Shown here piece by piece: positions 7,760 through 42,900 of a stretch of DNA of 64,000 nt. Both the position numbers and the translations under genes were made by a program. Position 1 is the first letter of the stretch. Each line of letters starts with the position of its first letter. The notes under the pieces were generated by a model that saw nothing but the letters and a program-made list of their open reading frames with translations, did not search any database and was not told the origin of the DNA. This DNA comes from Octopus sinensis (Eukaryota). The stretch covers positions 210,428,001 through 210,492,000 of the forward strand of contig NC_042997.1 of NCBI RefSeq assembly GCF_006345805.1, given 5' to 3'.

Positions 7760-7832
7760 GCCTCCATAGCTCAGTGGTTAGAGCACTGGTCTTGTAAACC
7801 AGGGGTCGTGAGTTCGATCCTCACTGGGGGCT
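7760..7832 (+). tRNA. tRNA-Thr-TGT: tRNA-Thr(UGU)
   Basis: GCCTCCATAGCTCAGTGGTTAGAGCACTGGTCTTGTAAACCAGGGGTCGTGAGTTCGATCCTCACTGGGGGCT, 73 nt. Full cloverleaf with anticodon arm CTGGT-CT[TGT]AA-ACCAG, A and B boxes, and a T6 terminator at 7844-7849. Confidence 0.97.
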
Positions 7833-8051
7833 TCTGTTACACATTTTTTGCTTTAATTTATAATTTCGATGTTATTTTTTCGATATTTTTTTCTTCACTT
7901 TATTCTTCGTTATTTTGTTTTCCATTTCACAACAGAATCCTTACGTGCCATCTCCGTCATAACAAATTACTTGAACAATATGAGAATTAGCTTAAAAATG
8001 CTGTCACATATTTATAATAACGAAATAGAAAAATAATAGGAAAAAAAAAAC

Positions 8052-12070: not shown

Positions 12071-12853
12071 CTGACACCGTTTTGTTGCCAATTTATGCTA
12101 ATTCTTTTGCGAAAGTCTTCTGTAAGTGCAGAGTTATGTCCCTTTATCGTGATGATTGCCAGGAAAAAAAAACAAGAAAAACGGGAAAAAAGTAATTTTT
12201 CTTAAATAAAATTCATGATTGGAACTGTTTAGTCGACCCACGAAGTAGAAACAAGCATCACAGGTGAATGAATAGGTTAAGATATATATTCTGTGAAGAA
12301 GGTTCAATGGATCTTACAAAACTTTAATTGGTAAATCTGTATGTGGTTGTACGACATACTAGAAAGAATAGCAAGGTATTCTTCAAATCGAATGCTATTT
12401 AATAAAAGGAAGGCTATGTTGGACAATGTAAGGCGTAGATAATAGGAAAAGGCGAGGCGGTTGGAACAACGTGTTCTAATCTGTCAGAGGGGCTAAATAA
12501 GAGGGAAAGGCAAATAGCAACAGAAATAATTGAAATGGTGAAGTCTAGTAGAAGAAGAAAAATGTGACGACCAGAGACCAGAGACCAGAGTCAAAGAGAA
12601 AAGGAAATCCAAGGAATAGTGAGAGAGTAGGAGGACGAGGGTGAGGGGAGCAGTAACAAGAGTCGGTCAAGGGAGGGGGAAAACAGGGAAAGGGAGAGGG
12701 AGAAAAAAATTCAAAGAATGTTAACGGATCTAATGAACTTTTCTCTCGCATTTTCTTCCTTTTACTTGTTTCACCCATTGGACCGCGGCCACACTGGAGC
12801 ACGGTTTCCTCCAGCAATTCAATCCCCGTAGTTCTTTTTTCTTAATGGCAATA

Positions 12854-13150
12854 TCTTTATATATAAAACTGTAGTTGTATGCTGTCTGTCTCCTACGATT
12901 TAGGTTCCTAACTACTCCCACATTTTGCGGTGCAGTTTAACCAAAACCGGGTATCTTATAGTCGTGATTCATATCGAGCCCTTCTGGGTATTAGCGCACG
13001 TCTACGATGAGTCTACGATTTAAAAAAAAATTTACCATCATTTTTTCCATTTTTAATGCATTTTTTGCTATTTTTTGGCTATAACTCTCTAAAAATGCTT
13101 ATATAGTTATTTCCCTTACAAACCCGAGCAACGCCAGGCGATACTGCTAG
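12854..13150 (+). mobile_element. Non-autonomous Helitron, ~297 bp
   Basis: A|TC 5' end and CTAG|T 3' end, with a GC-rich subterminal segment CCCGAGCAACGCCAGGCG. Homologous copies at 24091-24491 and 55637-55929. Confidence 0.8.
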
Positions 13151-13217
13151 TATATAATAATAATGAAATTATTGTATACAGTGCTCAGGTGCACCACAAC
13201 AAAAAATGTGTAACAAA

Positions 13218-13290
13218 AGCCCCCAGTGAGGATCGAACTCACGACCCCTGGTTTACAAGACCAGTGCTCTAACCACTGAGCTATGGAGGC
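13218..13290 (-). tRNA. tRNA-Thr-TGT: tRNA-Thr(UGU), identical to and inverted relative to 7760-7832
   Basis: Exact reverse complement of the 7760 gene. The 3' trailer GTTACACATTTTTTG is also shared. Confidence 0.97.
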
Positions 13291-19038: not shown

Positions 19039-22000
19039 ATGTCGGTGTTCAATATTTTCCCACTGAGCAATTCATTTGCCAGCTTTAATTGTGTCAACTG
19101 TCGCCTGTATGGCAGAAAGTGGGAACGGCGAAGTAAGTTCACTTTCCGGGGAGCAGAAGCGGAAGAGGTTAACCCGACGACTTTGACAATGGAAGTACCA
19201 AGACCATTAATTCCATGTAGGATTCTATGGTTAATCTCTTATTCAAAATTCTTTAACTCTTATTGAATGTTTAAATGAAGTCGTCCTAATTTTAATGCCC
19301 ACCTTCTCCTTTCTCTTTTCAAGCTGCCGATCCCGAATACCTGAGCAAGGTGTTCCGTGTCCTCCGCTTTGACTACATGCCAACCACTAATGCATCCCTA
19401 CACAACACATCTAAATTTTATTCCACTAATCAACAAGCTTTAATGATTCGTCGAGGTCTTCCGTTTAAGATAAAAATCACTTTTAATGAGAAGTATGATC
19501 CAGATATACACGAGGTGTCCTTCGTTCTCTTAGCAGGTAAGACAATTTCTTTTTAAAACATTTTTTGTATTTTTTTTTGTCTCTTGTTGCTGTTTAACTC
19601 GTGGTGGTCTCTGGTTTTTAATGAAAAAACATCCTAGCCATGGTTATCCCACCTTAGGTTTCATATAGGGCGGAGAGCTGGCAGAAACGTTAGCACGCCG
19701 GGCGAAATTCTTAGCGGTATTTCGTCTGCCGTTACGTTCTGAGTTCAAATTCCGCCGAGGTCGTCTTAGCCTTTCATCCTTTCGGGGTCGATTAAATAAG
19801 TACCAGTTACGCACTAGGGTCGATACAATCGACTTAATCCGTTTGTCTGTCCTTGTTTGTCCTCTCTGTGTTTAGCCCCTTGTGGGTAGTAAAGAAATAG
19901 GTATTTCGTCTGCCGTTACGTTCTGAGTTCAAATTCCGCCGAGGTCGACTTAGCCTTTCATCCTTTCGGGGTCGATTAAATAAGTACCAGTTACGCACTG
20001 TGGTCGATCTCGACTGCCCCTCCCCCAAAATTTCGGGCCTTGTGCCTAGATTAGAAAATACCTTAGGTTCCATATAATGTTTAAGACAGTAGGAAATGAT
20101 TTGGAAATTTGGCTGCTGTTTCTAGCAAGTCATGCAAGCGCCGAGAGCAGGGACGGAGAAACGTTTTAGTATCAGGGTTTCGTTGCCAGCACGAAGGAAT
20201 CTGAGGACGAGGGTGATGGGTTGCTTCCGTGCTGAAGGAAATTGTTCAATCTTTAATTTTACAAATTCCTAGTGTTAAGAACTTCTTGTTTTGGTGTGAA
20301 AGCTTGGAACTGGTTTTTCCTTTGAAATTTTTTTTTAAAGATTTCTCTGCAGGCGAAGGTTCCGCTACTCCAGACCTTACAGGTTCCTTGCTACTTCTAC
20401 ATGGATGCTGACACTGTACAGATATTTTACTATTTCGGTAACCAAGATGTAAAGTTAGTTTTTTTAAATTCCAGATTACAAACGTGACTGACGGTCATAT
20501 GTACTCTAACCCCTCACCCCCATTCCTTATATTTCATGTCCCTCAATGTATGTTTTTCCCCCCCAGTGAAAAACAGTCCTCAACTGCGGACGAAGTCTGC
20601 AAACGAAATATTTTGGTTGGCACCATTCCCCTTGTCTTTATTAAACCTCAGTAAATTGGAAAAGGTATTGCTATATCAGCTTCACGTTTCTCCTATTTTC
20701 AAAATTTAATTATAAAAAAGAGAATAAATGGAACTTGAACTTTACCAAACTTCGATCCCCCCCCCCAAAAAAAACCGTCTGCCGGCAAAGCTGTGTGGCT
20801 GAAATTTTGCTTTCAGGTTCCGTCCCACCCTGCTACACCCGGGGGTCGTCTCATTATAGGGAAATCGATGTACTCATTCTCTGAAGTGTTTACTTGACAT
20901 CAAACTGTACATAGATCAAAGCTGAGACCCCACCAAACTTGTGAGACCCCCGGGCAATTGCTCAGAGTGGCCCTTCATTAAGGAGGCACTGGTTTTACTT
21001 CGAGTGTCTTCTACACTCGAATCAGATCGATCGAAGCCTTGTGTGAGAGTTTGGAAACTGGAAAAACCATTGGCAGGATCATTCCGATAACCGAGTCTTT
21101 GTCCACCGGTTTTAACGCTGATATTACTTCGTCCTTCGCTGACAGTACTTTTTGATGCAAGAATTCAAAGCAGGTCACAGATCTGCAACCAGTGACGGAG
21201 ATCCTTAAAGCTCATAACCCCATCCTTCCTCTAAACAATAAGAATAGGTTAATGTTTTTATTTTTCCTCCAGACCAGGAGTCTCCAAACTACGGTCCGCG
21301 AGGTCAGTTCATCCGGCCCGCCGCCGCACTACCTGCAATGAGAGTTCATTTGCATCTGGTATGGCACTAGTGTTTGGAACAACTTATGTCTGAGCAAACA
21401 TTTTCAAAAATGTAGGATGTGAAGTCAGCACATCGAACGATGTTGACTGATAAACATTTGGAAGCAATTCTCTCGGCTGGATGAAGCAATTCCAAAGCAA
21501 ATATTGGTGATCTCTTAAAAAGCTAAACACACCAGTTTCACAATCTCACCAACCATTTTTGCTGCTTAGTTTGTGAGATTCAGATATATTTGCAGATATG
21601 GGTGTGATATAACTATCTTATTGCTAATGTCGCCTTCTCTGATAACTTTTTGCTAAATAAATATGTTGGTTGTCTTTATTTTTTGTGTATTCACTGCATT
21701 GTATGGAACAAAATGGTTATGCGGCCCACGATCATCATTCTCTCTGTTATCTGGCCCGCCATGGAAAATGTTTGGTGACCCCTGCTCAAGACCATCGTTG
21801 ATTAATATGTTTGGTGATCGATTCTTTGGCATAACTATAAAAGTATTACAACATAAAAACTTCTCAATCTTGTTCCGGTAAGGGAGGTTTAATGATTCTT
21901 TCAGAAGAGTTCTATAATTCCATTTATGACTGTTTTAAACGTTCGAAGCTTTTTTTTTTTTTTTTTTTTGTATAAAATGTTCATCAAACCCTTGTTTTGT

Positions 22001-25000
22001 AGGGGACAGGCCTGCTCCTGGTTTGGACACTCATGTCCATGTTGAGTTGAATGAAGGACCATTCGAAGACGAAGTGTGGTGGTGCAAGACGGAGGAAAAT
22101 AGCGAAACTGGATTGATTCTCAGCCTTCATCCACCAGCAAACTGTATCATCGGAGAATGGGATATTTTTGTGAAGACTTTGGCTCCAAGTGACGAAAGTG
22201 TGAATTACTATCTTTACGACCACAACTCTCCATTTTATGTTCTCTTTAACCCTTGGTGTGAAGGTAAGCCTAGATTTCCAATGAACAACTTGTATTACGG
22301 TTTTGTTCTCTGTTCAAGACAATGTCTATGCCCACATTTCTAACAAATTTGATTATCATCCATTTTTCAGTTTTCTACCCTAGAAAGGACCATATGTAAC
22401 ATTTTGATCATTTTCTGGTTTCGATATTGTTTCTCGATGTTAATATATTTAACGTGGCTTTTTCCTTTCTTATTCCGATGTTGATATATTTATGTTGAAA
22501 GCAGTGAACTGGCAGAACCGTTAGCAATCTGGGGGAAAATGCTTAGCGGCATTTCGCCAATCTTCATGTTCCACAGAGGTCGACTTGGCTTTTCACCCTT
22601 TCGGGGTCTGTAAAATAAGTAGCGGTTGAACAATGGGGCCGTTGTAATCAACTTGTCCCCAACCGGAAATTGTTAGCCTTGTGTCAAAATTTAGAACCTG
22701 TGTATTTGATGTTTATCGAAAGACTTTCTTGCAAACGTGAACTTCAACAGTTTAGGAATCTAGAAGGTGTGGCGTGGCTTGGTGGTTAGCATATCAGTTT
22801 GCGGGTCGTAAGATCGTGAGTTCAATTCCTGAATGTGCGTCGTCTTAGAGCAAAAAACTTAATTTACGTTGCTCCGGTCCACTCAGCTGGCAAAAATGAG
22901 TTGTACCTGTCATTCAAAGGGGGCCAGCCTTGTCACATTCTGTGTCACACTGGAACTGGGAACTGCGTTAAAGGAACGCGTGTCTGTGGAGTACTCAGCC
23001 ACTTGCACGAGAAGGCTGTTCCGTTGATCGGATCAACTGGAAGACTCATCGTCGCAAGTGACGGAGTGTCCGTTGGGATTCTAGAGCAAAATGCATATCA
23101 CGTGTTAATATTATTTTTGTTTCCTTATTACCCACAAGGGCCTAAACATAGAGGGGACAAACAAGGACAGACAAACGGATTAAGTCGATTATATCGACCC
23201 CAGTGCGTAACTAGTACTTAATTTATCGACCCCCGAAAGGATGAAAGGCAAAGTCGACCTCGGCGGAATTTGAACTCAGAACGTAGCGGCAGACGAAATA
23301 CCTATTTCTTTATTACCCACAAGGGGCTAAACATAGAGGGGACAAACAAGAACAGACAAACGGATTAAGTCGATTATATCGACCCCAGTGCGTAACTAGT
23401 ACTTAATTTATCGACCCCCGAAAGGATGAAAGGCAAAGTCGACCTCGGCGGAATTCGAACTCAGAACATAATGGCAGACGAAATACCGCTAAGCATTTCG
23501 CCCGGCGTGCTAACGTTTCTGCCAGCTCGCCACCTTCACGTGTTAATATATTTTTGTAAATGGAATTATAGGTACATAGGGTAAATGTAATAGATTGCCT
23601 TTCTTTGAAAATGTCTTTCTGCAGCTGACCAAGTGTATTTGGACAGCCCTGAGCTACTGAAGGACTACGTTCTAAACGAGTCGTTAACAATATTCGTTGG
23701 CACCAAAGAACAACTCAACTATAAACACTGGTACACAGGACAGGTAAGGCTTGGCCATGTTTCTAGGTGCAACTTGTCAGTGTGTGTGTGTGTGTGTACA
23801 CTTATATAGATACACACATGCATCTATGAGGAACGGTTAATGTGTCTCGTTAATTAAACCATTAGGCCATGTTCTGTTAAGATGCATGCTATCCCCGCCC
23901 CACACACGGACACACAAACAGACGCTCGTGCACACACGCCCTCCCATACACACATGGACACACGCATACTCATACACACGCGTAGATAGTCATCAATTTA
24001 TTCAAAAAACTGTTTAACTTTCTTTGAGAGAAACGTCATATGGATGAATGTATGCGTTTCTGAAGAAAACTGAAACCGCTGTATTATATACGAGCAGTAT
24101 CGACCGGCGTTGCTCGGGTTTGTAAGGGAAATAACTATATAAGCATTTTTAGAGTTACTTCCCTTATATAATAGCAAAAACATGAATTAAAAATGGGAAA
24201 AATTTATGGTAAATTTTTTTTTAAATCGTAGACATTTTTTGAGTTACTTCCCTTATATAATAGCAAAAAAATGCATTAAAAATGGGAAAAATTGATGGTA
24301 AATTTTTTTTTAAATCGTAGACTCATCGTAGACGCGCGCTAATACCCAGAAGGGCTCGATATGAATGACGACTATAAGATACCCGCTTTTGGTTACACTG
24401 CACCGCAAAATGTGGGAGTAGTTAGGAATCTAAATCGTAGGAGACAGACACCACACAACTTTTCTTTTATATATATATATATATATATAGATAGTTAGAT
24501 AGATATAAAAATGACATAAGTCAGTATTTAAAAAAACGCAACGCACACATATGAAGCACACACTTATAAACACACACACACACACACATTCAGACACACA
24601 TTCACATACTCATCTTGGACAACTCACAATGCTGGAACATAAGTTCAAAAGAAATAGAAAAAGAAATGGAAGAGATGTGTCACTGAAGAGATTGCAACAA
24701 TGCAATGAAATAATTGACAAAAAATACACAATACTGAACAATAACAGTAAAGGTCCGAACCAGTGCGTGTGTTTATTATTGTTGGTATAACGCCCCTCCC
24801 AAAGTTCAATAGAATTTATTTCGAAACGTATTCACATCAAGAATCTTGCAAACCAAATACAAATACTAATCATGTTCTGGTAATTGGTAATTATGCCGAC
24901 TTAGCTTCAAGTAGGGGCCTAGTTTCTGTCAGTTTTAGTTTATAGAATTTAGCATTTTTGAATTTCTTGTTTGTCATGAAGAACTCTGCCTATGGCTTTT

Positions 25001-25365: not shown

Positions 25366-28300
25366 ATTGGCAGAAGTTCCAAAGCAGCTCAGTCTGAGAG
25401 TGTGCAAAGCATGTACACACATACATATACAAGATGGTCACTTAGAACTTGTCTGGTTCGTTTGTAAGAATAACAAAGAAAAAGTTCCAAAGTGTTTTGG
25501 AAGATTTCTGGGGAAGGATTGGTTTAAAGTTTCTACGGAATCGGTGTGCGTAATCCAAAGTTTATTATTTTCCAGTTTGATGATGGCGTCTTGGATTTGA
25601 CTCTGTACCTGCTTCGTAAAGCTTTCTCACTCGTAAATTCTTCATTCTCTAATCCTGTGACAGTCATAGAAGGCTTAAATCGAATGGTAAGTGCTTTTCT
25701 TAGTCTTTTTGTTTTTGTTAATGCGTAAACATAGATTGGACGATCTTTAACCCTTTAGTGTTCGCATTATTCTGCCAAAACTAATGTTTTTTTATCCACA
25801 TTGTTTTGAACTAATCATGCATTATCTTGTAGCTATGAGATTTTGATGAGGAAGCTGTTAATTTTTAAAATGACATTGTAGGGTTGGTGTGAGACACCAG
25901 ATCTGGCCAGTTTGAACATAAAACAGGCAGAATACTTTTGGCTGGATATGGCCAGTTTAAATACTAAAGGGTTAAGATTGTCTCAAGAGAGTAACAGTAA
26001 AATGTTTCAACAACAAAAGTATGAAGTTACAAATTAAATATTAATCGTTAACAGAAAAAAATGTTGCGACAGAAAGTATGTCGTGCAGGATGGGCGTCAA
26101 TGACAGTCACCGTCATTTAGAGGGCTGCAGTTGTTGTATCCATAGATTCCTGCAGCCATTGATCTTCGTTGTATCACAATCACTGATGCACCTTATATAT
26201 AAGCAAGGTATGTCAAAGAAAAGGCGAAATCGTTAATGAGATTTCAATTTGTAAAAAAGAAAAAAACTCCAACTCGAGGAGTCTGAGTGAGACATCTCTT
26301 GTGCTGGTCAAACTGCCAAATAACTTGAGCTTTCTTTTGACCAGAATTCAATGGATTAATTGCTTGCTGACATCATCAATCCTTGACACCATCCATTTTT
26401 ATTGTTTAGCTCTATTTTACGTCTGAACACAGTGATTCAGGTTCGATCCCTAGGCAGTGAGTTGGTGTTTAGGGCTCTGCCAATATGCCTACCACAACTT
26501 CGTGGATAAAGTGAAATTTTCTGAATAAAATCTTATCCTAACAAGAACATTTTGAAAATTGGTTAGAACAAGGTGGAATCAATTTTTACAGCTACAGACG
26601 GCTAAACTTAAAAGTAGGATGCATTGTTTTATGCGATATTTCCCGACTGCTTCATTGTTATATCCATTTAGGTTGCATATGACTCAAATGCTGTAATGTC
26701 CATTCATTGGTACCAATGCAACCCGGAAAGCAGACGTCCCACTGCTTGGAGTTCAAGTGTTGAAATTATACAGGAATATAAAAAGGGATTAGGAAAAGTA
26801 AAATATGGCTGTTGTTGGACGAATGCTGCTTTATTGACAACGTGTAAGTATTTCGTGCATTCCACTTAAGCAAATTTCAGTTCGTTTTAATATCTTCTGC
26901 GTGAAATAATTAACTTTTAATGTTAGATAATTAAATTTTGATTTCTTGATTGAAACAACTGGGTTATAGAATTTGTGCCAATAAGACAGTGAAATGTTAG
27001 CTGAAGAACCTGGGGTATTAGATAAAAGGATGCAATTGCTGTATTCCTTGGATATAAAGTAGTGGTGATTCAAAACATAACCACTAGATAACCAGTCAGA
27101 CACCACGACCGAACCACAATGGCTTCACATGATCAGTCTATTAAGCAACCAACCAGGGTGAAGCTGTTGCATAATTCAGTCTTCTAGAATTTTCCCCTTG
27201 TACCCTATAAAAGAGCTGCTTTTGGTGCCTCCCCTCTTTGCAGAATGTCGAGGCGGCTGAATGACATGTCTCTATTCTTGCCATGACCAGGAAGATGGCC
27301 AAGAACCTCCGTTGTCATGAACATAGCCCAGATGTTTTTATATATGTTGGGCAAACTGCATGTTGCCATCCCAATAGCTTTCTGCAATCTGAGAAAATAT
27401 TGCTCTCACATCATCATCATCATTTAGCATCCGCTTTCCATGCTAGCATGGGTTGGACGGTTCAACTGGGGTCTGTGAAACCAGAAGGCTGCATCAGGCC
27501 CAGTCTGATCTGGTAGTGTTTTTACGGCTGGATGCCCTTCCTAACGCCAACCACTCTGTGAGTGTAGTGGGTGCTTTTTACGTGCCACCCGCACAGGTGC
27601 CAGATGGAGCTGGCAAACGGCCACGGACGGATGGTGCTTTTTACGTGCCACTGGCACGGGGGCCAGGCAAGGCTGGCAACGGCCATGAACGGATGGTGCT
27701 TTTACGTGCCACCGGCACGGGGTCAGGCGAGGCTGGCAACGGTCACGAACGGATGGTGCTTTTTACGTGCCACTGGCACGGGGGCCAGGCGAAGCTGGCA
27801 ACAGCCACAGTCTGTTATTATTGCTGCTGTTAACAGTAAGAGGCCAACACAGTTTGTCTTTGTGATAAATTCTGTTAAATATTCATGGGTTTTGTTCAGT
27901 TACTTCTTCCTGCAGCAAAGAAACCTTTTCCTTTTAACTCAATCGGCAACCACAGCAGCATTGGCGAATCACAAACAACACACCTTATAACATTAGTGAC
28001 AAAACCAATAACACCTTTATGGAATCGGGGAAATGTTTGAAATGCACAGCTTGAATATTAGATTTGAAAAAAAGAAAAAAACAATATGGTGTAGGAGTGG
28101 CTGTGTGGTAAGTAGCTTGCTAACCAACCACATGGTTCTGGGTTCAGTCCCACTGCGTGGCATCTTGGGCAAGTGTCTTCTGCTATAGCCCCAGGCCGAC
28201 CAATGCCTTGTGAGTGGATTTGGTAGACGGAAACTGAAAGAAGCCTGTTGTATATATGTATATATATATGTTTGTGTGTGTGTGTTTGTCCCCCTAGCAT

Positions 28301-29899
28301 TGCTTGACAACCGAAGCTGGTGTGTTTACGTCCCCGTCACTTAGCGGTTTGGCAAAAGAGACCGATAGAATAAGTACTAGGCTTACAAAGAATAAGTCCT
28401 GGGGTCGATTTGCTCGACTAAAGGCGGTGCTCCAGCATGGCCGCAGTCAAATGACTGAAACGAGTAAAAGAGTAAAGAGTAAAAGAGGCTGAGAGAAATA
28501 ATGGAAGGCAAAATAAATATGAAAGAAAAGGATAAATCAAGAATTATGTGACTGGATAATATAAAAAAAATGGATATTCTTAGAATAGAAATGGCCATGG
28601 TCTTCAAACTATTGAAATTAGAACTTAACATGTTAGCTTCCCCACTTCCTGCTGGTAGGTCATGGTGGTATGGTAGCAAGTCCTGCATGACCCACCAGCA
28701 GGTCGTTTTTTACAATATCCTTCCTATGTGTTTTCTGAGAGCTGGAATGCTCCAATTACTTTGATTTATGCTTTTGCTACACTAAAAGAACAATTCTTTA
28801 TAGATTTTCAATATTAATTTTTTTTACGTTTTTCTTCTCATTTCACCATGGAATGAGGTAAAATAAAAGATTGAGAATTGAGAAAATTTTATTTGCCATT
28901 GAAGCAAAAAGAGTTCTTTAGGGAAAAATTGGTAGATTTTCCAACAGAAACAGAAGGGAATGAAAAATATTTAACTTGCCATGGAAACTAAAATAGTTCT
29001 TTTAGAAAAGATTTCAAGATCTTCCAATAGAAAATATCTCAAATTTTTAATTGACCACAGGTAGGTTGTGTGGTACCTAGGATGTGATTTGAACTAAGGT
29101 ACCTCATAACCCTCCGATGGGATGTGGGTATCCAACACTACCTATGTGATCCTTGCCTCACATATGGCATAGTGTAAAAATATTATGCCGCTCATGTCAA
29201 AATTAAGATATCGTATTGGGACCCTGGGATAAAATGTAAAATGAGGTTCAGGGGTCAGCATGTTAAAATACAAAAGGCCTTGGTCTTTCAAAGTGTTGAA
29301 AGCGGAACTTATTATTTTTATTAAGGTTGTATAATTCTGGTTATTTTGTAGTTACTAATCTTTGAAATACTACCAGACATTCACACACAGACATTGACTC
29401 AAACTATTTGACATTTTTGGTTAGTTTGCCGTGCTCTTGGAATTCCTGCTCGTGTGGTCACCTCTTTTAAATCGAATCATGATATCAACAGCAATAAAAT
29501 CAGTCACCATTATCTAACAATGATCAAGTCACTAAAACGACTGCCTCATCTCACCCATCAGTCAATCTGGTAAGTGTTGCTTTTTAAAATTTTTTGTTTT
29601 TCAGTATCTTAGTCATTATTTCTTTGTTGGTAGAACACAATATTAGGCAGGCTGTGTGTTTAGGCAAGAATGACACCTATAAATCTCCATATTTTTTATT
29701 ACTCGGACATACTCTTTTACTTGTTTCAGTCATTTGACTGCGGCCATGCTGGAGCACCGCCTTTAGTCGTGCAACTCAACCCCGGGACTTAATCTTTTTG
29801 TAAGCCCAGTACTTATTCTATCGGTCTCTTTTTGCCGAACCGCTAAGTGACGGGGACGTAAACAGACCAGCATCGGTTGTCAAGCAATGTTAAGGGTGT

Positions 29900-29940
<41 letters not shown>

Positions 29941-32900
29941 TATTTCACTTTACAAATGTCCAACAATTATTTGTATAAACTAACGGACAAGAGATAGTGA
30001 ATGGGGCAGTCTCCATTGCATTAAAATATTTTAGTTATTTATAAGGAGCCTGACTGGCTCCCGTGCCAGTGGCATGTAAAAAGCTCCATCCGAACGTGGC
30101 CGGCGCCAGTGTCACCTGACTGGCTCCTGTGCCGGTGGCACATAAAAGCACTACCCAAACATGATTGATCCCAACCCCCACCCAACCCCTGACTGGCTCC
30201 TGTGCTGGTGGCACGTAAAAAGACACCCACTACACTCTCGGAGTGGTTGGCATTAGGAAGGGCATCCAGCTGTAGAAACACTGCCAGATCAAGATTGGAG
30301 CCTGGTGCAGCCATCTGGCTTTCCAGATCTCAGTCAAACTGTCCAACCCATGCCAGCATGGAAAACAGATGTTAAATGATGATAATAATAGAAATCATTC
30401 ATGCTTATTAACGACAGAATAAGTAGACAAATGAGAACACCTTATCACAAAACTGGTTGCCAGTTCTGTTTCACACCTGAGATTTTGTTTGGGAGTTGAA
30501 AATACCAATCAAAATGTCTAGAATTCTTGTAGTATTAACAGGAAAACTCACAAAATCTACTTTTGAGTTTACCATTTATTTGGTTAACCCTTTTAATATT
30601 AACCTGGCTGAAACCACCTCTGGCTCTGTAGTACAAATGTCTTGTTTTCAAAAGTTTTGAATTAAAATCTTCCACCAAATCTTAGTCACAATTTAAGTTC
30701 CTAGCTTAATGATAATGAAGTTATTTTACTAAATTCTTTGTTATTAGAAAATTACTATTTGTAAATCTCACAATGAGAGATATTCAGCAACAGTACTTTG
30801 GAGTAAAGATTGTTTACCAACATAACATGGCAGTCCTGGTTTAGGATGAATGTGGCTGTAATTTAGCTCCAGGAGACAATCGTCTCCAGCTGGCTATAGG
30901 ACACGATTTGTGTCCTTATATTTTCGAAAATATAAGGCTACACATCGTGTTCAAAAATATGACACAGATCGTGTCCTATAGCCAGCTGGAGACCATGTCT
31001 TCTGGGGCTAAATTACAGCAACATTCGTCCTAAACCAGGACTGCCATGTTATGTTGGGAAACAATCTTAAATACAAATTCTTTATGTTTAAAATTAATTG
31101 AAAGAAACACAGAGCATCTTAACAGAAATATGGTAACAAAAGGGTTAAACACCAGCTCATCTGATTGGTCAAACCATGTTCTCATAGGCATTAATGCCTT
31201 TTATGGCACAGTAAATTTATTGTTGCTGGTCTTTTGCCTTTTATGGCAACAAAGTTAGTCTGGGGAAATTGGTGAAATGGTTGAACATTAGAAGATTGGC
31301 TGTAGTTCTTTCAAGCTCATAAAAATTGACTTTTGAAACGTCTTATCTACTCAAAGCATTATTCTTTAAATTGCAGACAATTTTACACAGGTATTCTTGC
31401 ACAGGATGATGCCAAAATTTGTCAGAATTCACTTCTATATAGATAAATAGATACAGAACATTCCATCCTTGTAATACAATTTAATTTCTCGCATGTGGTC
31501 TGTTTTTTGGCAATAGCCTTGGAATGGTTCATGCTTTTTACTCAATAACTTTCCCATTCTTTTAGCCATGTTTTGGTGTAGACCAGGGCTGGCCAACTTG
31601 CGGCCTGCAGACCACATGTGGCCCACTTGCGGCCTGCAGACCACATGTGGCCCACTTGCGGCCTGCAGACCACATGTGGCCCACTTGCGACCTGCATACC
31701 ACATGTGGCCCACTTGCGGCCTGCAGACCACATGTGGCCAACTTGGGGCCTGCAGACCACATGTGGCCCGTTCTCTTGAAATGAGTTTATATAAACAAAC
31801 ATTTAAAAAATGTTATCAAACATTAAAGATTGTAATGAAAAGTAAAAAAGAAAGATACTAAATGGCGGTGCCCCAGCATGGCCACAGCTTGTGAGCTGAA
31901 ACTAGATAAAATAAAATAAAATACTGTTTTTGCAACAATAATATTTTGTGTTGAATCAACGATTATTCATTAATTATTGTAATTAATAAGCACGAGAAAG
32001 CAAAATGCTTTCAATTCTGTCAGTATATAAGCATCCCTCACAACTTTCTTTAATTAAAGTGGCCCTTAATGTAATTGGAGTTGGCCAGGCCTGGTGTAGA
32101 CAGTCTACTCGTACAATTGTCATGTGAGCATTCATTACTGAACATTCGTTAGTTTGAGACATTTTTAAATATCACTGAATTTAATGTTAATATTTGACAA
32201 TCTCAGAAGTAATCCAATCTGTATTTCTGCTTCAGGAATTTTCATGTATGGATGGATGCATGGACACTCAGGCCGGATCTGCCATCTGGTCATGGTTGGC
32301 ATGCTGTAGAGCCAACACCTAAAAAACTGGAATTTGGTAATTTTTGAAATTTTGAAGATTGCATTTCTAAATATCAACTGAACGTGAATTTCTTGTGACA
32401 TCTTGTCCTTAAATAATTTAACACGGAAAAATAATTTAATGGCGATGGTGACTTAGAAAAAAAAATTCAAGATTGTAAAATAGAAACGAATGTTGAAATC
32501 TTGAAGGGTCACCAAATAAGGTATCACAAAATGGGAATTCACAAGAGTCTCTGGTTATGATGTGGTTGTTGGATGATGCGGATAACATTCTTTGTCACAT
32601 GACTTTCAAAAGATGGAGTTGAGAGAAAATTTCACTGTAGATTAACATGAAGTTCAAATATAAGGTCATCCCATAAGTTCTGTCTGAATTTTGAATAAAG
32701 AAAACAAGAAATCAAATGTTATATTTAATTGAAATTTAATCATCAAAGTACTTTCCCTGATTATCTATGACTTCCTTCCATCTATTTACAAGCTTTTTAA
32801 TCCCATAAATGTAAAACTCTTTTGGTTTCAAAGCGAAGAACTCTGAAATGTCAGTTTCGACCTCCACCTGGCTTGCGAAAGTTATGTCCCCCAAATGATT

Positions 32901-33931
32901 CTGTAAACTACGAAACAAATGGTAGTCTGAAGGAGCAAGGTCGGGAGAATAAGGTGGATGAGGAATTTTTTCCCAACCAAGCTCTTTGATCTTCTGTGAG
33001 GTGATCTTTGCAGCATGGGTTTGCATGTTGTCCTGGTAAAACATCAATCCTTTTCAGTTCACTAAAGCGGGTCTTTTTTCTTCAAAGTTTGGTTCAAACA
33101 CTCTAATTGCTGACAGCAGACTTGAGCATTGATTGTTGCATTAGGTGGTAACAATTCTAAGTGAATTACTCCTTTGCAATCCCACCAGATAGAGAGAAGA
33201 ACCTTTTTCCCCAAGTAGTTCCTTTCTCAGTTGTGGTTGAGCTTTTTCCTTTTTACCAATCCACTGTTTACGACATTTAACATTTTGAAAGAAGATCCAT
33301 TTTTCATCACAAGTCTATCCAAAAAGGGTGAAATGAGTTTGCGAGAATGGAGAGAAGAGCAGATGTCAACTCAGGATTTGTGGTTGCTTTTGGACAATTC
33401 ATGAAACACCCATTTTCCAAGTTTAGGGACCTTTCCAAGTTGTTGAAGATGACGATGAACAGTTGTATGGTTTGAACTAAGCTTTATTGCCAATTCTTCC
33501 ACTGATAATGCAGGATTTTCTTCAAGCAATGCCTCAAGGAGCTTATCATCAAACTCAACTGGATGTCCTGTTCAATCTTCATCTTCAAGGCTGAAATCTC
33601 CACTTCTGAATTTTGCAAACCATCTTCTGCAAGTTCTTTCATTCAAGCATTCTTTCCCATAAACTGAGTGTATGTTTCAAGTCGCTTCGGCTGCAGAGTT
33701 TCCTTTTTTTGTACTCATAAAGCATTAAATGCTATTTGGATACTTCCATGTTAGAAACGGTTTTAATCAAAGAAATTTTAATTCTATTATTCTGTAAAAT
33801 AATATTTAATTAGTTTAAATGTACACAAATGCATAAAAATAATTTTTAATTCCATTAGACATTCTAAAATACTATTAAATTTCATTCAATTTTAAAAAAG
33901 GTAAAATCAGACAGAACTTATGGGATATATA

Positions 33932-33962
<31 letters not shown>

Positions 33963-36900
33963 TGTGATACAAGTTTTGTTAAGGTTAATTCTTACTGATA
34001 TTCTGTAGAAATTATAGTCAGCAATGATTTGTTTTTGTTTCATTTCATATTGAGAAATCGGATGTAAGCAATGAGATCAGACAAAAATGGTTAATGGGTG
34101 TACATGCCATATTTCGGGGGTTTTTATCCCCTCATCAGCATCCGGTCTAACCTATTATTGTCTCTGAACACATTGCTTATATAAGCACTAAACACATTCC
34201 TGGGGCTGTAGGTATTTTGTTATGCAACCATGATATGCATTAGTACACTACACAACACTGCACAAATGGTGCATTGTTTGCATAACGAAGTACCTACAAA
34301 TCGTTAATATGAAAGAAGTGTATTTCTGCAGTGTATACGTGTGATGGATTAGAATTACGGCTCAAAGTATGTAGCTGCCTCTATACATGACCACCGTGGC
34401 AACAATGGGAATGAGAAAGGTGAGAAAAAATGTCCTTTAATGACCCATTATAAGGAATGGCCTCCTTGACTGGATTAAGTCTTCAGGGAAGTCTGAAGAA
34501 ATGGTGTTTGAGAATTTTCTTTGTCAACCAACACTTCGTTAACTGTTGCCTCAAAATATGATTGGCTGAAATGTTGTAAAGTTTTTCTTTACTTGTGAAG
34601 ATGGATTAGGGCTCACCATTCATACCAAATATGGTAATAGTGGCTAAAAGCACTTCAATGTAAATGGATTTAGCCTAAGTCGTTTGGGAATGGTTCATTC
34701 CTGAGAGATTGACTGCAATTATTGGTTCACTGCCAATCATGGAGAATGTCCTGGTATCGAAAATACTTTCCAGTTTCTATTTGAATTACTTTGAAGATGA
34801 GGACAATGTTTTGTGGCCAAACAAAAAATACTAACCCCTCACACAATCTGTCAGATTAGGGCACAATCTGTCGGATTAGGGCACAATAGTCTGTCGGATT
34901 AGGGCACAATAGTCTGTGAGATTAGGGCACAATCATCTGTCAGAATAGAGCTCAGGATATTTTAAAACCTAGAAATCACATTTGAACTACATGTGAATAT
35001 TCATGTGCATGATGGATAAACACTGCTTGATATTGAGTGAAGGGGGAGTTGTGTAAAATTGAAGAGTTCTAAGCTCAATAACCCCCCCCCCCCACCAAAA
35101 ATGTGTGCATTGTTATGTGTAAACAATTCTACGCTATGCTGCCATAGCAGATGTTAAAGTTGTTGCCAATATTGAGGTTTCTGTAATGATGTCAGTTTGT
35201 TTGCATGGTTTTACACCAGAATTGCTGATGGATGGAATAATTTGTTTTCACAGGAATGAGTGTGTATGGTCCAACACCTCTCTCCTTCATTAAAGAAGGA
35301 AATATCGGAACTGGGCAAGACGTGAACAATTTTTTTCATGACCTGAACGTAAAATCTGCCCATTACATTCGAACATCAAAAGGTTGGTCACTTTTCCAAA
35401 CGGATCCAGACATGTAAGTTCGAGTTTTACCATGATTTAGTGAACAAACTAAAATTAGTTGATATTTCTATGTAACTTCTATTAACTCAGGTTTGTGGCT
35501 GATATAAATGTTGGGGGGTTTTCTCCAGTCAAGCTTTTCAGTCTAGAGAGAGATGGGGAGAGAAAGACTACTAACATAAAATTCTATCATCATTTAACAT
35601 CTGCCTTCCATGCTGGCATGGGTGGAACGGTTTGATAGGAGCCGGCCAGGCAGAAGCCCGTGCCAGACTTCTGTGACTGTTTTGGCAGGGTTTTTATAGC
35701 TGGATGCCCTTCCTAACACCAACCACTCAGCAGAGTGGACTTAGTGCTTTTTATGTGGCATAAGCACAGGTGAGGTCAGTAGTGATTTGTATGTGGCACA
35801 AGCACAGGTGAGGTTAATTTTGGCAAGGTTCTTACAGATGGATGCCCTTCTGAACACCAACCACTTTACAGTGTGGACTGGGTGCTTTTAAGTGGCACCT
35901 GCACTGACAGGGTCACCAAGTACCTTGCAAGACAAAAAAACATCTCTTGAGATGGGAAAGGGCATTGGAGGAGGTGATCTTGTGTCAGTCGATGCAAAAT
36001 AAAAATAAAAATTGACAAGCAGTGGTAAGCGGATTGGAAAGATATTCTGTAGTCAATGGCTGCCAAATCCAGGACATGCTTACATAAAACAACAGTTTGT
36101 GTAGAAGGATAAACTTGACAAACAGTCAGGGGAGGTTAAGAAGCAGCAGCTCTACATGAAGGTGGCTCTTACTGAAAAAAAGCTCAGCAATAATTTATAT
36201 TTATTGTAATAAATATTTTCTTCTGATGATTAAGTAAACTATTCGTTAGCAATGTAATTTTTTTCATTAATCTCTTGGGTATTTAATTAGAAATTTATAG
36301 CAAACTGAAGGTGGCGAGCTGGCAGAAATGTTAGCATGCCGGGCGAAATGCTTAGCGATATTTCGTCTGATATGTTCTGAGTTCAAATTCCGTCGAGGTC
36401 GACTTTGCCTTTCATACTTTCGGGGATGATAAAATTAAGTACCAGTTTTGCACTGGGGTCGATATAATCAACGTACTCCGTTTGTCCCCTCTATGTTTAG
36501 CCCCTTGTGGGTAATAAAGAAACAGGTATTTCATCTGTCATTTTGTTCTGAGTTCAAATTCCACCGAGGTTGACTTTGCCTTTCATCCTTTCGGGGTCGA
36601 TAAATTAAGTACCAGTTTCACACTGAGGTCGATGTAATCGACTTAATCCCTTTGTCTGTCCCTTCTATGTTTAGCCCCTTGTGAGCAGTAAAGAAATATA
36701 TAGTAAACTGTTCTAGATGAATATATATCTACAATTGCAACAATTGTGCCATTCTCTGTGGAGGGAATCTGTGGAAGATGTAGACCCAAGAAGACATGGG
36801 ACGAAGCGGTGAAGCAGGGTCTTCAAATGTCAGGCTTCATGGAGACAATGAGAAGAGACTGAGAGGTTTGGTGATGTGCTGGGCTTATCAAATCAAGTGA

Positions 36901-39900
36901 AATCATAATTGTGGCCATGACTGGTAGCATGATCTTCAAATGTTGGGGCCTCTCGGAGGCAAGGGACGAAGTGGTGAAGCATGACCTTTGATGTTAGGCC
37001 TCATGGAGGTGATGACAAGAGACTGAGACTTTGGTGAAACGCTGTGTTTGAGAAGACTTGTCAAGCCAAGTGGAACTGTAACCATGACCAGTGCTATGTA
37101 AACGACACTAATGGAATTAGTCGTGGGCTTTGCCAGTGTCATGTCAATGGCACTGATGCTGGAGGCACATAAAAAGCACCCATTACACTTTTGGAGTGGT
37201 TGGGGTCAGGAAGGGCATCCAGCTGTAGAAACCATTCCAAATCGGACTGGAACCTGGTTTAGCTCTCTGGTTTACCAGTTCCAGCCAAACTGTCCAACTC
37301 ATGCCAGCACGGAAAGCAGATGCTAAATGTTGATGACCCCTGTGGGTAGTGTCAGGAAATGACATACAATAATTATAAATTAATTTCTATAACATTAATC
37401 ATGGTGGCAAAAGTATACGCCCAAAGTTACCCACCAAATGACGGGTAATACTTTAGTGCAACACCAGTTGAGAGAAACACTGGGAAGGTCTATGCTGAGG
37501 AGGTTCAATAAGACTGAAATAGTCAGTCATGACTCTACTTGCATACAAATATCAGTTTAAAACTAAGAATACAGGCTTGAATAATTTCATCACTGCATGA
37601 TGAAATTATTTTACAATGTTAATATTTTGAGATTGTCATATATTTTTTATTTTCATGGTGGCAAGATGGCAGAAACATTAGCATGCCGGGTGAAATGCGT
37701 AGCCGTATTTTGTCTGCCGTTACGTTCTGAGTTCAAATTCCGCCGAGGTCGACTTTGCCTTTCATCCTTTCGGGGTCGATAAATTAAGTATCAGTTACGC
37801 ACTGGGGTCGATGTAATTGACTTAATACCTATGTCTGTCCTTGTTTGTCCCCTCTGTGTTTAGCCCCTTGTGGGTAGTAAAAAAATATATTTTCGATAGA
37901 TTTAACATTAATATTGAACTTGATATTTTCCTTCTTATTGCAAAGTAAATTTTTGTTCTGTTCATTAAATATCTTACCATTGCCAAACTGTTAATTGTTA
38001 ATTAACAATTTCGTTAACAATTTAACTTTTAAGTAAAATTTTGAAATCATTATTGGACTAATTAACTTGAGTTAATTTCAATTGAATTGAAGTTAATGGA
38101 TTTTACAGTTTTGGCACTTTTTAAAGGTGTTTTTAGGTGGTTTTAGAGGAAAAACTGATTTGATTTTTTTTCTATGATAAAAATTGTTAATGGTTTGTTG
38201 ATAACTTCCATTACAGTTTTAAAGAATTAACTGATTATTGGTAATTGAACTTAATGTTTTGGTTAACAGTTAACAAAGTTAACTTTTCAATTAATGGCGC
38301 CGACCTTTGACTTTTAGCCTGGTCTCTTAGCAAACTGGTTTGCTTCAGTATTTTAATCTTTACGTGTCCTAAAGTGGCGAGGTGGCAGAAACGTTAGCAC
38401 ACCAGGCGAAATGCTTAGTGGTATTTTATCTGCTGTTACGTTCTGAGTTCAAATTCTGCCGAGGTCAACTTTGCCTTTCATCCTTTTGGGGTTGATAGTA
38501 ACAGTTGCATACTGAAGTCGATCTAATCAACTGGCCTCCTCCCCAAAATTTTAGGGTCTTGTGCCTAGAGAAAAGAATCTTTACATGTCCTTCAGGTAAC
38601 TGAAAATTATTTTGCTCTCTCTTTAGTGTAGGAACATTCATCTGCACTGCAGCCCCTCTCGGGAAACCAGTGTGTACTAAAGACCCATATAGTATCAAAT
38701 TTTTATATCATGACATTACAGAAGAATATAAATCTTCAAGTAAGTTCTGACCAAACCATTTCATTCAGTTATTTCATTTTATTATGATTCTTCTTTGGAG
38801 ACTAACTCTGTATTAATTTATTTTAGGTACATCAGAGAACTCAGAATTACTCCCGGCCAACCAAGTACACTGTTCTCAATCAGTATCAGTGAGATTTTTA
38901 AAATTTAATAAATTTTTAACACTTGTGTAGTTTTATAACTTTAGCTCTAGTCAGAGCTGGTCCTTAACATTGACGAGGGGAGACGTGTTTGCTTGACCCT
39001 ACCCCACCCTCGGGTGTTGGCTTGTTTGTTTGACTTTTTTTCGCCTCCTTTAGAGATTTTGAGCGCTCATAAGGAAGCAAGTGTAAGTTCCATCCAACCG
39101 CCTCTCAAGCTTCTTTGATAACGTCCAGGTTTCTGAGCCATATAGTAGAATTGGTTCGACTGTGGCTTTGAAGATTTTAAGTTTGAAATCTCTACTTAGA
39201 TTTGATGACCAGATCTTATGCATGTCATTACAGGCTGACCAGGCCATACCCTTTCTAGTTAGAAAATCTTTTTCAGATGATGATATGTATTTGTAATCAG
39301 AAACCATATTTAAGAGTGTATTGTTGAGAGTATGGATGATGAAATCACTGTTGGAAAGGCACTTGTATATATATTCGGTCTTGGACTCATTGAGGTAAAG
39401 ACCTACACTCGCCTCCTTATGAAAGCTCAAAATCTCTCGTGGAAGCGTCAATCAACCAAAGTACAACTATATGGGAAATTACCACCTGTGTCATGTCTTG
39501 TGAAAGGTAGGAGAGTCCAGTTTGCTGGACATTGTTGTAGAGCTGAAAACGAGGTAATTTCTATTCTCCTCTGGAAGCCATCTGCTCGCGATACCAGAGG
39601 GTACACACTCTCCTACCCTTATGTAATCTCCAGGGATACAGGCATCCAGCAACAGGACCTCTGTAATGCCATGATGGACCGTGAAGTCTGGCGTAGCATG
39701 GTAAATTCCATTGTCTCGACCACGGTCGAACGATGATGATGATGATGTTTGTTTGACCTTCAGGCACAAGTTCGTTTGTTCCTCCAGGGAAAAGTTCATT
39801 TGCGTGACACCCCTTCCCCAAGACTACCCTCTTTATCGGAGCCCCCCACCCACACGCCATCCCACTTAGTTTGCTTGTTTGACTTATGCGACTGCTGCAA

Positions 39901-42900
39901 CACATGTTCTTCTAACGCTGAAACAAACCGTCCATATTTCTTTGATTTCTGTCTTCCCAAAGTCAATGCCGGTCTTTCCTTTACACTTTTAGCATATAAG
40001 AGTAGAGTTTCCAGAGAATTACAATTGTAAAATCGGTGAAATTCAAATTATTAAATTCGATTTACACAATCCATCGCAAGAAACTATCAAAGTCAACTTT
40101 GTGATGGAAGTCCAAGCCATTGACTACACCGGACGCGAAAATTTAATCCTATTTGAAGAATCTGTTTCTGAACTGGTCATCTCTCCTGGATCATGTAAGT
40201 TAACTTTCCTTCGTTCTGTGAATGGTTCCATGAATCTACCAACGGCAATCACTGAAACCGTTTTCTTTGCAGCTCAACAGACAAGTATCAGCATCCGGCC
40301 AGAGAACTATGTTCCTGTTTTGCAGAGAGGTTTACCTTACCGCTTTGCTATGAAATTAATCATCTATGGTTTTGTTAAAGGTTGCAATATGAAATTTACC
40401 TGCACGAAGGTCTTCACTCCTCAGTGGCCAAACTTAGAGATAAAGGTAAATGCTTACATATGAATTCTTTAATATTGTTTCAGCCAGTAGATTGTGGCCA
40501 TGCTGGGGCACCACCTTGAGTTTTTAGTCAAACAAATCAACCCCAGTGCATTTAAAATTTTTTAGAGCCTTGTACTTATTCTGTTGGTCTCTTGCCAAAC
40601 AGTTACAAGGATGTAAACAAACCAATACCGGTTGCCAAGTGGTAGTCTCTCTTTCTCTCTCTCTCTCTCTCACACACACAGTTTCTTATTTTTTTTATTG
40701 CCCACAAGGGGCTAAACATAGAGGGGACAAACAAAGGGATTAAGTCAGTTTACATCGACCTCAGTGCGTAACTGGTACTTAATTTATCGCCCCTGAAAGG
40801 ATGAAAGGCGAAGTCAACCTTGGCGGAATTTGAACTCAGAACGTAACGGCAGACGAAATACCTCTAAACATTTCGCCTGGCGTGCATCCATTTCTACCAA
40901 ATCCACCCAAGGCTTTTGTAGGCCTGAAGCTATCATAGAAGACTGTTGCCCACGGTGCCATGCAGTGGAACTGAACTAAGAACCAGGTAGTTGGGAAATA
41001 AACTTTATTTTTTTTTTTTTTTACATTTCTTGGTTTTTGGGGTCAACTGAAGTTTCAATAGTTAATTCTGTTACCTGGTTGCCAATCTTGACATTAGGAA
41101 TGATAACACTTGATCTTCATTTGAAGTTTTTGGTTGACATTTTGTTATGCTAACGAGGTTAGTGAAGAAATTCGATACAAAAGGAGGTAACTAGAGAAAG
41201 GTTATACAACTAAACGGATGCTATTCAAAAGAAATGGTCATGGAATATTTAATACAGATTGTACTAAAGCTGACCCTTATTGGAAACTGTCTTTTGGTTC
41301 CCTAACCCCATTTTTCTATTTGTGGAATGTTGAATCGAAATCGATCAACATCAATAGAATTTGTAGTTGTGGTACCAGTGCCGGTGGCACATAAGAGAAC
41401 CATCCGAACGTGGCCGTTGCCAGCACCGCATCGACTGGTTTCTGTGCTGGTGGCACGTAACAAACACCATCCGATCGTGGCCGTTGCCAGCCTTGCCTAG
41501 CCTCCATGCCGGTGGCACATAAAAAGCACCATCCGATCGTGGCCGTTGCCAGCCTTGCCTGGCCTCCGTGCCAGTGGCACGTAAAAAGCACCATCCGAGC
41601 ATGGCCGTTCGCCAGCCTCGTCTGGCACCTGTGTCTGTGGCACATAAAAAAACACCATCCGAGCGTGGCTGTTCGCCAGCCTCGTCTGGCACCTGTGTTG
41701 GTGGCACATAAAAAACACCATCCGAGCATGGCCGTTCGCCAGCCTCGTCTGGCACCTGTGTCGGTGGCACATAAAGAACACCATCCGAGCATGGTCGTTC
41801 GCCAGCCTCGTCTAGCACCTGTGTTGGTGGCACATAAAAAACACCATCCGAGCGTGGCTGTTCGCCAGCCTCGTCTGGCACCTGTGTTGGTGGCACATAA
41901 AAAACACCATCCGAGCGTGGCCGTTCGCCAGCCTCGTCTGGCACCTGTGTCGGTGGCACATAAAAAGCACCCACTACACTCACGGAGCGGTTGGCGTTAG
42001 GAAGGGCATCCAGTTGTAGAAACACTGCCAGATCAGACTGGGCCTGGTGCAGCCTTCGGGCTTCCCAGATCCCAGTTGAACCGTCCAACCCATGCTAGCA
42101 TGGAAAACGGACGCTAAATGATGATGATGACCAATTCCATGAACGATCATTTTGACTTGGTCCTAATCACTTTCTAGAATTTCATCTTATGAGCGAGCCT
42201 GTATTTTGATCCATGTATCATCAATGGTACCAAGTTTAATTTCTATCAGGGTCGAAATAGCTTGTGGTGTGGTGGGGGTGTAATTCACCTCCCTCGTGGG
42301 TCCTCTTGCAGCATAGATCTTCTCCAGCCAGGATATATCTTTGGAATCCCTTCCAGCCGAAACTCTGGCCAGAACCTAATAACTTCCCTCGGGGTGTAAT
42401 TCACCTCCCTTGTGGGTCCTCTTGCAGCATTGATCTTCTCCAGCCAGGATATATCTTTAGAATCCCTTCCAGCCGAAACTCTGGCCAGAACCTAACAACT
42501 TCCCTCGTCTCCTGTAGCCACCATGTCATTCCTGAGCAACAGAGGCCCCTGCGAGTCATCCTTCCACTCACATGACCTCCCTTGCTCCTCTCCTTACAAG
42601 GCCATCCACATGAGATCACCAACCCTATACTTCCAGCCTGATTTAGCCCCAAGCATAGAATAACTAGAGTCAACCAAACATGCCTATAGATATAGACTGA
42701 GTTCAAATTCCGCTGAGGTCGACTTTGCCTTTCATCCTTTCGGGGGTCGATTAAATAAGTACCAGTTAAGCACTGGGGTCGATGTAATCGACTTAATCCG
42801 TTTGTCTGTCCTTGTTTGTCCCCTCTATGTTTAGCCCCTTGTGGGCAGTAAAGAAATAAATATAGACTGCAACTCTTTACATTCAACAGTAAATATGATG

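Follow-up and report, generated by a model that had tools for sequence, protein, structure and literature searches.

Locus and gene structure

The window, the 64,000-nucleotide stretch of the Octopus sinensis genome analysed here (contig NC_042997.1, positions 210,428,001 to 210,492,000, forward strand), contains a transglutaminase gene of 15 exons that spans window positions 19039-45572 on the + strand, the strand of all gene features described below. The encoded protein keeps the fold and the nucleophilic cysteine of animal transglutaminases and carries, in its catalytic core, substitutions at positions that are nearly invariant in the family. The gene is already covered by the NCBI annotation (XP_029645553.1, "annulin-like [Octopus sinensis]") but is undescribed. 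A hand-built gene model, for which the splice sites were read by eye and their phases checked, is 100% identical to XP_029645553.1 from exon 2 to the stop codon; an approximate TG2 sequence served for this model as an exon-finding probe only and not as evidence. All junctions are AG/GT and the frame is intact across the 15 exons, so that the hand-built model and the NCBI protein agree with the initial annotation on this point. The interval to which that annotation drew attention, 26672-32336, corresponds exactly to exons 6-8 with the introns between them, and the peptides it quoted are all present on the + strand where it had placed them.

Exon 1 (19039-19216) contains the NCBI start codon at 19189 (MEVPRPLIPS), and its reading frame extends without interruption from an earlier ATG, at 19039 (MSVFNIF...), the longer start that is used by isoform X1 of Octopus bimaculoides. 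The donor of this exon is placed at 19216, and not at 19132, in line with the NCBI model and with the isoform of O. bimaculoides. The N-terminal β-sandwich (Transglut_N) begins in exon 2 (19324-19536) and occupies exon 3 (22003-22263). The catalytic core begins in exon 4 (23625-23743) and extends through exon 5 (25576-25686) to exon 6 (26672-26843), which encodes the oxyanion Trp257, an extra Cys291 and the nucleophile Cys292, followed by W-T-N where the family has W-V-F. Exon 7 (29425-29569) encodes the retained His320 together with His329 and Gln347, which occupy calcium-site-3 positions that are acidic in the family, while exon 8 (32236-32336) contributes the catalytic His353 as well as Glu375, Thr377 and Lys380. 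In exon 9 (35254-35413) the sequence SVYGP stands where TG2 has CCGP, and FFHDLNVKS replaces FVFAEVNAD of the family, which includes calcium-site residues. The core ends in exon 10 (38627-38739; ...HDITEEYK...). Exon 11 (38827-38888), which encodes the linker between the core and barrel 1 and is modelled with low confidence, measures 62 nt in O. sinensis and is one codon shorter, 59 nt, in O. bimaculoides. Barrel 1 is encoded by exon 12 (39993-40194), with Tyr540 of the DYTG motif at 40125-40127, and by exon 13 (40273-40445), and barrel 2 by exon 14 (43767-43903) and exon 15 (45434-45572), in which the domain ends at a TGA stop codon. An alternative in-phase acceptor of exon 14, at 43749, is unused by the NCBI model. 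A candidate last exon at 44988-45224 was ruled out by its wrong phase, the real last exon starting at 45434. Intron 12 (40195-40272; 28166-28243 in the O. bimaculoides locus L001) measures 78 nt, preserves the frame and contains no stop codon in either species, and its retention would add 26 residues to barrel 1 with the frame unbroken. No gene neighbours for a comparison of synteny were found within 10 kb.

The protein displays the four-domain architecture of a β-sandwich, a catalytic core and two β-barrels, and matches the Pfam models Transglut_N (79 bits), Transglut_core (44.7 bits) and Transglut_C (33.6 bits), all above their cut-offs. An AlphaFold2 model built from a 79-sequence alignment has a mean predicted local distance difference test score (pLDDT) of 87.7 and a predicted template-modelling score of 0.91. 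Low confidence is limited to the first four residues and the core-barrel linker, and the block that forms the loop of calcium site 3 (residues 321-330) is of moderate confidence, with a mean pLDDT of 66. The predicted model superposes on closed factor XIII and on GTP-bound TG2 with template-modelling (TM) scores of 0.86-0.89, that of factor XIII being 0.89. A query of the 140-aa spliced core returned 0 matches in a word-indexed protein search, which reflects the sensitivity of the index because the full-length query did match.

Catalytic-centre residues and their rarity

Residue equivalence with TG2 was transferred through an alignment to factor XIII, and the roles of the TG2 residues (Trp241, Trp332, Thr360 and others) are those given in PMC13073648. 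In the HMMER alignment of the octopus core to human factor XIII A (E = 2e-28), which by its score lies far beyond chance, the second cysteine of the octopus motif falls on Cys314 and the first on Gln313, the octopus histidine on His373 and the glutamate of AVEPTP on Asp396. The peptide KYGCCWTNAALLTT of exon 6 (26801-26842) thus carries YGCCWTN in place of YGQCWVF, and exon 8 (32236-32336) encodes NFHVW...GWHAVEPTP, where GWHAVEPTP replaces GWQxxDxTP. The initial annotation had read WNFHVW within exon 8; its catalytic histidine stands, while the first tryptophan is encoded by a split codon whose TG ends exon 7 and whose G starts exon 8. Likewise, the tryptophan of AWSSSVEII (26744-26770) and the tyrosine of DYTG (40122-40133), to which attention had been drawn, are indeed kept, but the mechanistically important oxyanion tryptophan is that of SIHW (26708-26710), also kept.

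A large part of the catalytic apparatus is therefore in place. The nucleophile Cys292 (TGT, 26813-26815) corresponds to TG2 Cys277, and the catalytic His353 (32243-32245), in an invariant column, to His335. The oxyanion Trp257 (26708-26710) is the counterpart of TG2 Trp241 and factor XIII Trp279, and the tunnel Trp350 is the counterpart of Trp332. Asn351 (TG2 Asn333), Thr377 of exon 8 (Thr360), His320 of exon 7 (His305) and the barrel Tyr540 (40125-40127; Tyr516) are retained as well. The changed positions are headed by Glu375 (GAG, 32309-32311), which replaces the triad Asp358 of TG2, and by Cys291 (TGT, 26810-26812), which takes the place of Gln276 and is serine in O. bimaculoides. Lys380 (32324-32326), a lysine in both species, occupies the position of Glu363, and Val387/Tyr388 occupy those of Cys370/Cys371; Thr294 in place of valine and His372 in place of glutamine are further changes. 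In the calcium-binding loops, His329 (29505-29507) and Gln347 (29559-29561) lie at near-invariant acidic positions (Asp) that are changed in both species. Residue 417, which is aspartate in ~93% of the smaller relative set described below, is lysine in O. sinensis and glutamate in O. bimaculoides and lies outside the 19 columns that are departed in both. The ligands Asp321, Asn323, Asn325 and Asn415 are kept. Ligands are assigned here to individual calcium sites on the basis of the factor XIII and TG3 structures.

The rarity of these states was assessed in two sets, namely an alignment of 120 metazoan transglutaminases, 118 of them non-octopus (set 1), and 253 aligned animal transglutaminases recovered by an exhaustive HMMER search of 1.84 billion representatives (set 2). 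A motif scan of ~360 sequences contributed its Asp/Glu tally only, as a loose expression for the nucleophile gave spurious matches and was left unused. In set 1 the residue before the nucleophile is glutamine in 118/120 sequences, the octopus pair being the two that differ, and the triad acid is aspartate in 117/118 non-octopus sequences (the other having a gap), with non-Asp residues solely in the octopus pair. The corresponding counts in set 2 are 248/253 for the glutamine and 249/253 for the aspartate. Glutamate at the triad acid is found in the octopus pair alone in set 2, a result with which the motif scan agrees. A few members elsewhere in set 2 have aspartate or serine for the nucleophilic cysteine, or histidine or glutamate for the glutamine; judged from these alignments, degenerate copies recur in the family and the octopus combination is unique. 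At the position equivalent to Glu363, where both octopus species have Lys380, 111/118 relatives have glutamate.

The departures extend well beyond the active-site motifs. Among columns conserved in >=90-93% of the other transglutaminases, the octopus pair departs at 22-23 of 84 in set 1, where the other sequences have a median of 1 and a maximum of 11. In set 2, where the 95th percentile is 7 and the maximum 15, its 20 departures in 82 columns exceed those of every other sequence, and other proteins share at most 2 of the 15 derived states that the two octopuses have in common. The 19 columns departed in both species are all located in the catalytic core, none of the 16 outside it being affected (hypergeometric P = 0.008; two-sided Fisher P = 0.017). 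By these measures the octopus pair is the most derived in the set, with substitutions at 19-23 of ~82 near-invariant columns where the median is 1-2.

Orthologue, selection and other elements of the window

A single orthologue is present in O. bimaculoides (XP_052830583/585), with 83% identity and the same 15 exons; the coding sequence rebuilt from its genomic locus translates exactly into the database protein. It reads QYGSCWTNAALL and GWHAVEPTP, and thus has in common with O. sinensis the glutamate, encoded by GAG in both, the WTN motif and the majority of the remaining changes in the core, so that these are not a private decay of one species. The residue before the nucleophile is cysteine (TGT) in O. 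sinensis and serine (AGT) in O. bimaculoides, giving YGCCW versus YGSCW. The initial annotation had called the gene a lineage-specific paralogue, which is borne out, since the O. bimaculoides orthologue is the only close relative and everything else is ~30% identical. Its suggestion that the codons be checked for recoding edits can be answered from the code itself: adenosine-to-inosine editing cannot restore the canonical residues, because an edited GAG would encode glycine and not aspartate, and TGT, which would have to become a glutamine codon, contains no A.

In both species the reading frame is uninterrupted and each of the 15 exons is bounded by canonical splice sites. The pairwise ratio of nonsynonymous to synonymous divergence (dN/dS) ranges from 0.45 (NG86) to 0.54 (YN00 and maximum likelihood) at a dS of ~0.17-0.20, with a bootstrap 95% interval of 0.33-0.60, and never exceeds 0.71 in 500 codon bootstraps; it is clearly below 1. 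Only 2 of 62 retained near-invariant residues differ between the species, compared with a background of 17% (P = 8e-4), and together with the dN/dS below 1 this places the fold and the remaining conserved residues under purifying selection. At the departed columns 4 of 19 differ, about the background rate, and these positions, the pre-nucleophile site included, are now free to vary. On the sequences of the two species this is a living gene and not a decaying one. Its constraint is, as far as protein identity tells, weaker than that on the canonical transglutaminase (TGase) K-like gene, the proteins being 83% and 91% identical between the species, respectively; the K-like loci exceed 100 kb in both species and the comparison of constraint is one of protein identity alone. 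Alignable intron sequence is 87% identical between the species, little less than the coding DNA at 89.8%.

Two further features of the comparison concern the region of the active site. Exon 8 is identical at 100 of 101 nt between the species. Synonymous divergence is lower near the active site (exons 6-9, 26672-35413), where 8 of 151 identical-residue codons differ within codons 301-480, than in the rest of the gene, where 61 of 480 do (P = 0.01); chance, the local mutation rate or a constraint at the RNA level may be the cause.

Octopus has at least three transglutaminase paralogues, namely a K-like gene (P0045), a hemocyte-type gene (P0282) and the gene described here. In neighbour-joining trees the octopus pair stays unplaced on a very long branch, the stem of which measures ~0.9 substitutions per site. 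The protein collections yielded no orthologue from any species other than O. sinensis and O. bimaculoides. Octopus vulgaris is represented there by K-like and hemocyte-type copies, the former 99.5% identical to that of O. sinensis, but by no orthologue of the present gene, which may reflect incomplete annotation or a true lack of the gene. A cuttlefish protein (P0128), the weak neighbour-joining sister (74 of 200 bootstraps), was considered as an orthologue and rejected, since the gene that corresponds to it in octopus is another one, of canonical type, and no more than 1 of the 15 octopus-derived states recurs in it. The cuttlefish hemocyte-type copies (P0128 and P0280 from the Logan transcripts, the Acanthosepion pharaonis 'TGM1' fragment CAE1272223.1, and locus L003) read RYGQD[FY]VF. 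In P0128 and P0280 the nucleophilic cysteine is replaced by aspartate and the following tryptophan by phenylalanine or tyrosine, while the glutamine, histidine, aspartate and PQE motif are kept, P0128 also keeping CCGP.

Other elements of the window lie outside the transglutaminase exons. A tandem array of 27 tRNA-Thr(AGU) genes occupies 8048-12070 on the - strand, ~7 kb upstream of the transglutaminase gene, with a period of 152 bp, 98% matches and copies that score 59-68 bits against the Rfam tRNA model. It is flanked by two opposite tRNA-Thr(UGU) genes at 7760-7832 (+) and 13218-13290 (-), the whole span being 7760-13290. No tRNA genes were found in the O. bimaculoides locus. An open reading frame at 3179-3622 (+) represents the remnant of a mariner-type transposase (Pfam Transposase_1, 27 bits), with a DIAPSDYHLF-like motif. 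An interspersed repeat resembling a short interspersed element occurs on both strands in introns and flanks, with the in-frame reading ...SEFKFRRGRLCLSSFRG...; its 30-nt core has 13 matches in the window at <=3 mismatches, against 0 expected by chance, for example at 15137, 19744, 19928, 23245, 36382, 37732, 42702 and 50615. A C-rich segment is duplicated at 47521-47723 and 48487-48699, ~970 bp apart with 91-93% identity; its open frames are long and rich in proline, and its GC skew is strongly negative.

Functional interpretation and comparison with known transglutaminases

The reading that we favour, to which we give about an even chance, is that the gene is a maintained, fast-evolving and strongly re-purposed Octopus paralogue that would have lost calcium-switched cross-linking and would act in a scaffold-like manner, with at most weak thiol chemistry. 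The paralogue keeps the four-domain fold, and its Cys-His-carboxylate centre is chemically complete, with glutamate for aspartate. It has lost the glutamate of the amine-activating His/Glu pair (now Lys380), several acidic calcium ligands and the invariant glutamine before the nucleophile, and its main role would be that of a binding or scaffold protein with a transglutaminase fold. Cross-linking activity has probably been lost, and a scaffold role is the probable outcome. Active animal transglutaminases are regarded as invariant in the Cys-His-Asp triad and in the GQCW motif. The octopus copy has long been kept by selection with a glutamate in the triad and without the glutamine that precedes the nucleophile, its His/Glu pair being broken and its calcium sites eroded. 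It thereby constitutes a natural experiment on the residues needed for acylation as opposed to transamidation, on the tolerance of the fold for glutamate in place of aspartate and on the drift of enzyme paralogues to scaffold or hydrolase roles, and its value lies chiefly in transglutaminase enzymology and in the evolution of pseudo-enzymes.

Several points weigh against a scaffold-like protein. The exchange of aspartate for glutamate is the most conservative change possible, and Cys-His-Glu triads function in other enzyme folds. The cysteine, the histidine, a carboxylate, the oxyanion tryptophan, the tunnel tryptophan and threonine, the His305 equivalent and the barrel tyrosine are all kept, unlike in band 4.2, the classic inactive member, which is without the triad and the oxyanion tryptophan. 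With two species only, the retention of these few residues does not count statistically for or against. Literature searches returned neither a paper on the octopus gene nor mutagenesis data on the Asp-to-Glu exchange.

The main rival to the scaffold is a hydrolase or deamidase. The protein could be an active, re-tuned Cys-His-Glu thiol enzyme whose acyl-enzyme with glutamine is resolved by water, a reading that we consider possible but clearly the less probable; in the same tentative sense it could work as a deamidase, hydrolase or isopeptidase largely free of the usual calcium switch. Such an enzyme would make use of the retained Cys292, His353, Trp257, Trp350, Thr377 and Asn351 and of the carboxylate at 375, and the near identity of exon 8 between the species (100 of 101 nt) is consistent with it. 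Its attraction is that transamidation in particular should suffer from the break in the His/Glu pair. That pair (His305/Glu363) and calcium at site S3 are required for thioester formation and isopeptide resolution but dispensable for hydrolysis (PMC13073648, a 2026 review), and loss of the Glu363 equivalent is predicted to hurt transamidation and not hydrolysis (PMC13073648). Efficient acylation is nevertheless disfavoured by the lost acidic ligands of S3, which is said to be required for the thioester, and the exchange of cysteine and serine at the departed pre-nucleophile column, along with the change of about a quarter of the near-invariant core positions, also counts against this reading. 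A more specific form, in which the gene would encode a dedicated octopus protein-glutamine deamidase, hydrolase or isopeptidase that uses Cys-His-Glu and has shed both the calcium switch and the amine-activating pair, appears to us more doubtful again; if true, it would add a novel type of catalysis to the animal transglutaminase fold.

A cross-linking enzyme of the ordinary calcium-dependent kind, tolerant of the substitutions, would account for the full domain set, the confident closed-form model and the intact cysteine and histidine, but seems improbable from the alignments, in which the Asp-to-Glu change combined with loss of the preceding glutamine is unique among 253 aligned (and ~360 motif-scanned) transglutaminases, Lys380 breaks the His/Glu pair and ligands are lost at calcium-site positions. 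That the gene is on its way to loss, as a recently relaxed or unexpressed copy kept open by chance, we judge very improbable. A dN/dS of 0.45-0.54 is high for an enzyme, coding DNA is barely more conserved than introns, and the protein collection contains O. vulgaris copies of the other two paralogues but no O. vulgaris protein of this type; yet 15 exons with canonical splice sites are intact in two species at a dS of ~0.18, dN/dS stayed at or below 0.71 through 500 codon bootstraps, and hardly any of the invariant residues still present differs from one species to the other (P = 8e-4). The least credible proposal, and one that we regard as very nearly untenable, is the redox-gated enzyme of the initial annotation, in which a Cys291-Cys292 vicinal disulfide would lock the nucleophile. 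The adjacent TGT TGT codons of O. sinensis invite it, but a vicinal-cysteine lock loses its basis because the orthologue has AGT (Ser) at the position of Cys291, a column that belongs to the departed set, in which differences between the species (4 of 19) are about as frequent as in the background. The parallel drawn with TG2 fails in turn, since the known redox pair Cys370/Cys371 sits elsewhere in the fold and is replaced by Val387/Tyr388 in the octopus protein.

The octopus gene can be set beside three known systems. Its four-domain architecture is like that of the animal transglutaminases (factor XIII A, TG1-TG7, arthropod hemocyte TGase/annulin; PF00868 + PF01841 + PF00927), and its 15 exons follow the TG1/factor XIII type of layout. 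Sequence matches in the PDB are full-length (E 6e-42 to 4e-72), and the model superposes on the closed forms with TM scores of 0.83-0.89. Like these enzymes, it keeps the nucleophilic cysteine, the histidine, the oxyanion and tunnel tryptophans, the threonine and the barrel tyrosine. Unlike them, it has glutamate for the triad aspartate, cysteine or serine for the invariant glutamine, WTN for WVF, a lysine in the His/Glu pair and eroded calcium-site ligands; it is without the Cys370/371 pair of the TG2 type, and its identity to any other member is only ~30%. The cuttlefish copies P0128 and P0280 resemble the octopus gene in being cephalopod transglutaminases with a non-canonical catalytic centre, but the counterpart of the cuttlefish copy in octopus is another paralogue, the canonical P0282 (53% identity, YGQCWVF), and the pattern is the opposite one: the cuttlefish copy lost the cysteine and kept the glutamine, aspartate, PQE and CCGP, while the octopus gene kept the cysteine. 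The cuttlefish copies represent an independent, apparently expressed pseudo-transglutaminase of decapodiform cephalopods. With EPB42 (protein 4.2) the octopus protein has in common a full-length transglutaminase fold that is under selection after the loss of canonical active-site features, the EPB42 chain in the PDB matching with E = 6e-42 and a TM score of 0.76 to the octopus model. Protein 4.2, as an inactive member, is without the catalytic triad and the oxyanion tryptophan (PMC13073648), whereas the octopus protein keeps Cys292, His353, a carboxylate and Trp257, and a loss of the protein 4.2 type is not what is found. The two are independent events in unrelated lineages.

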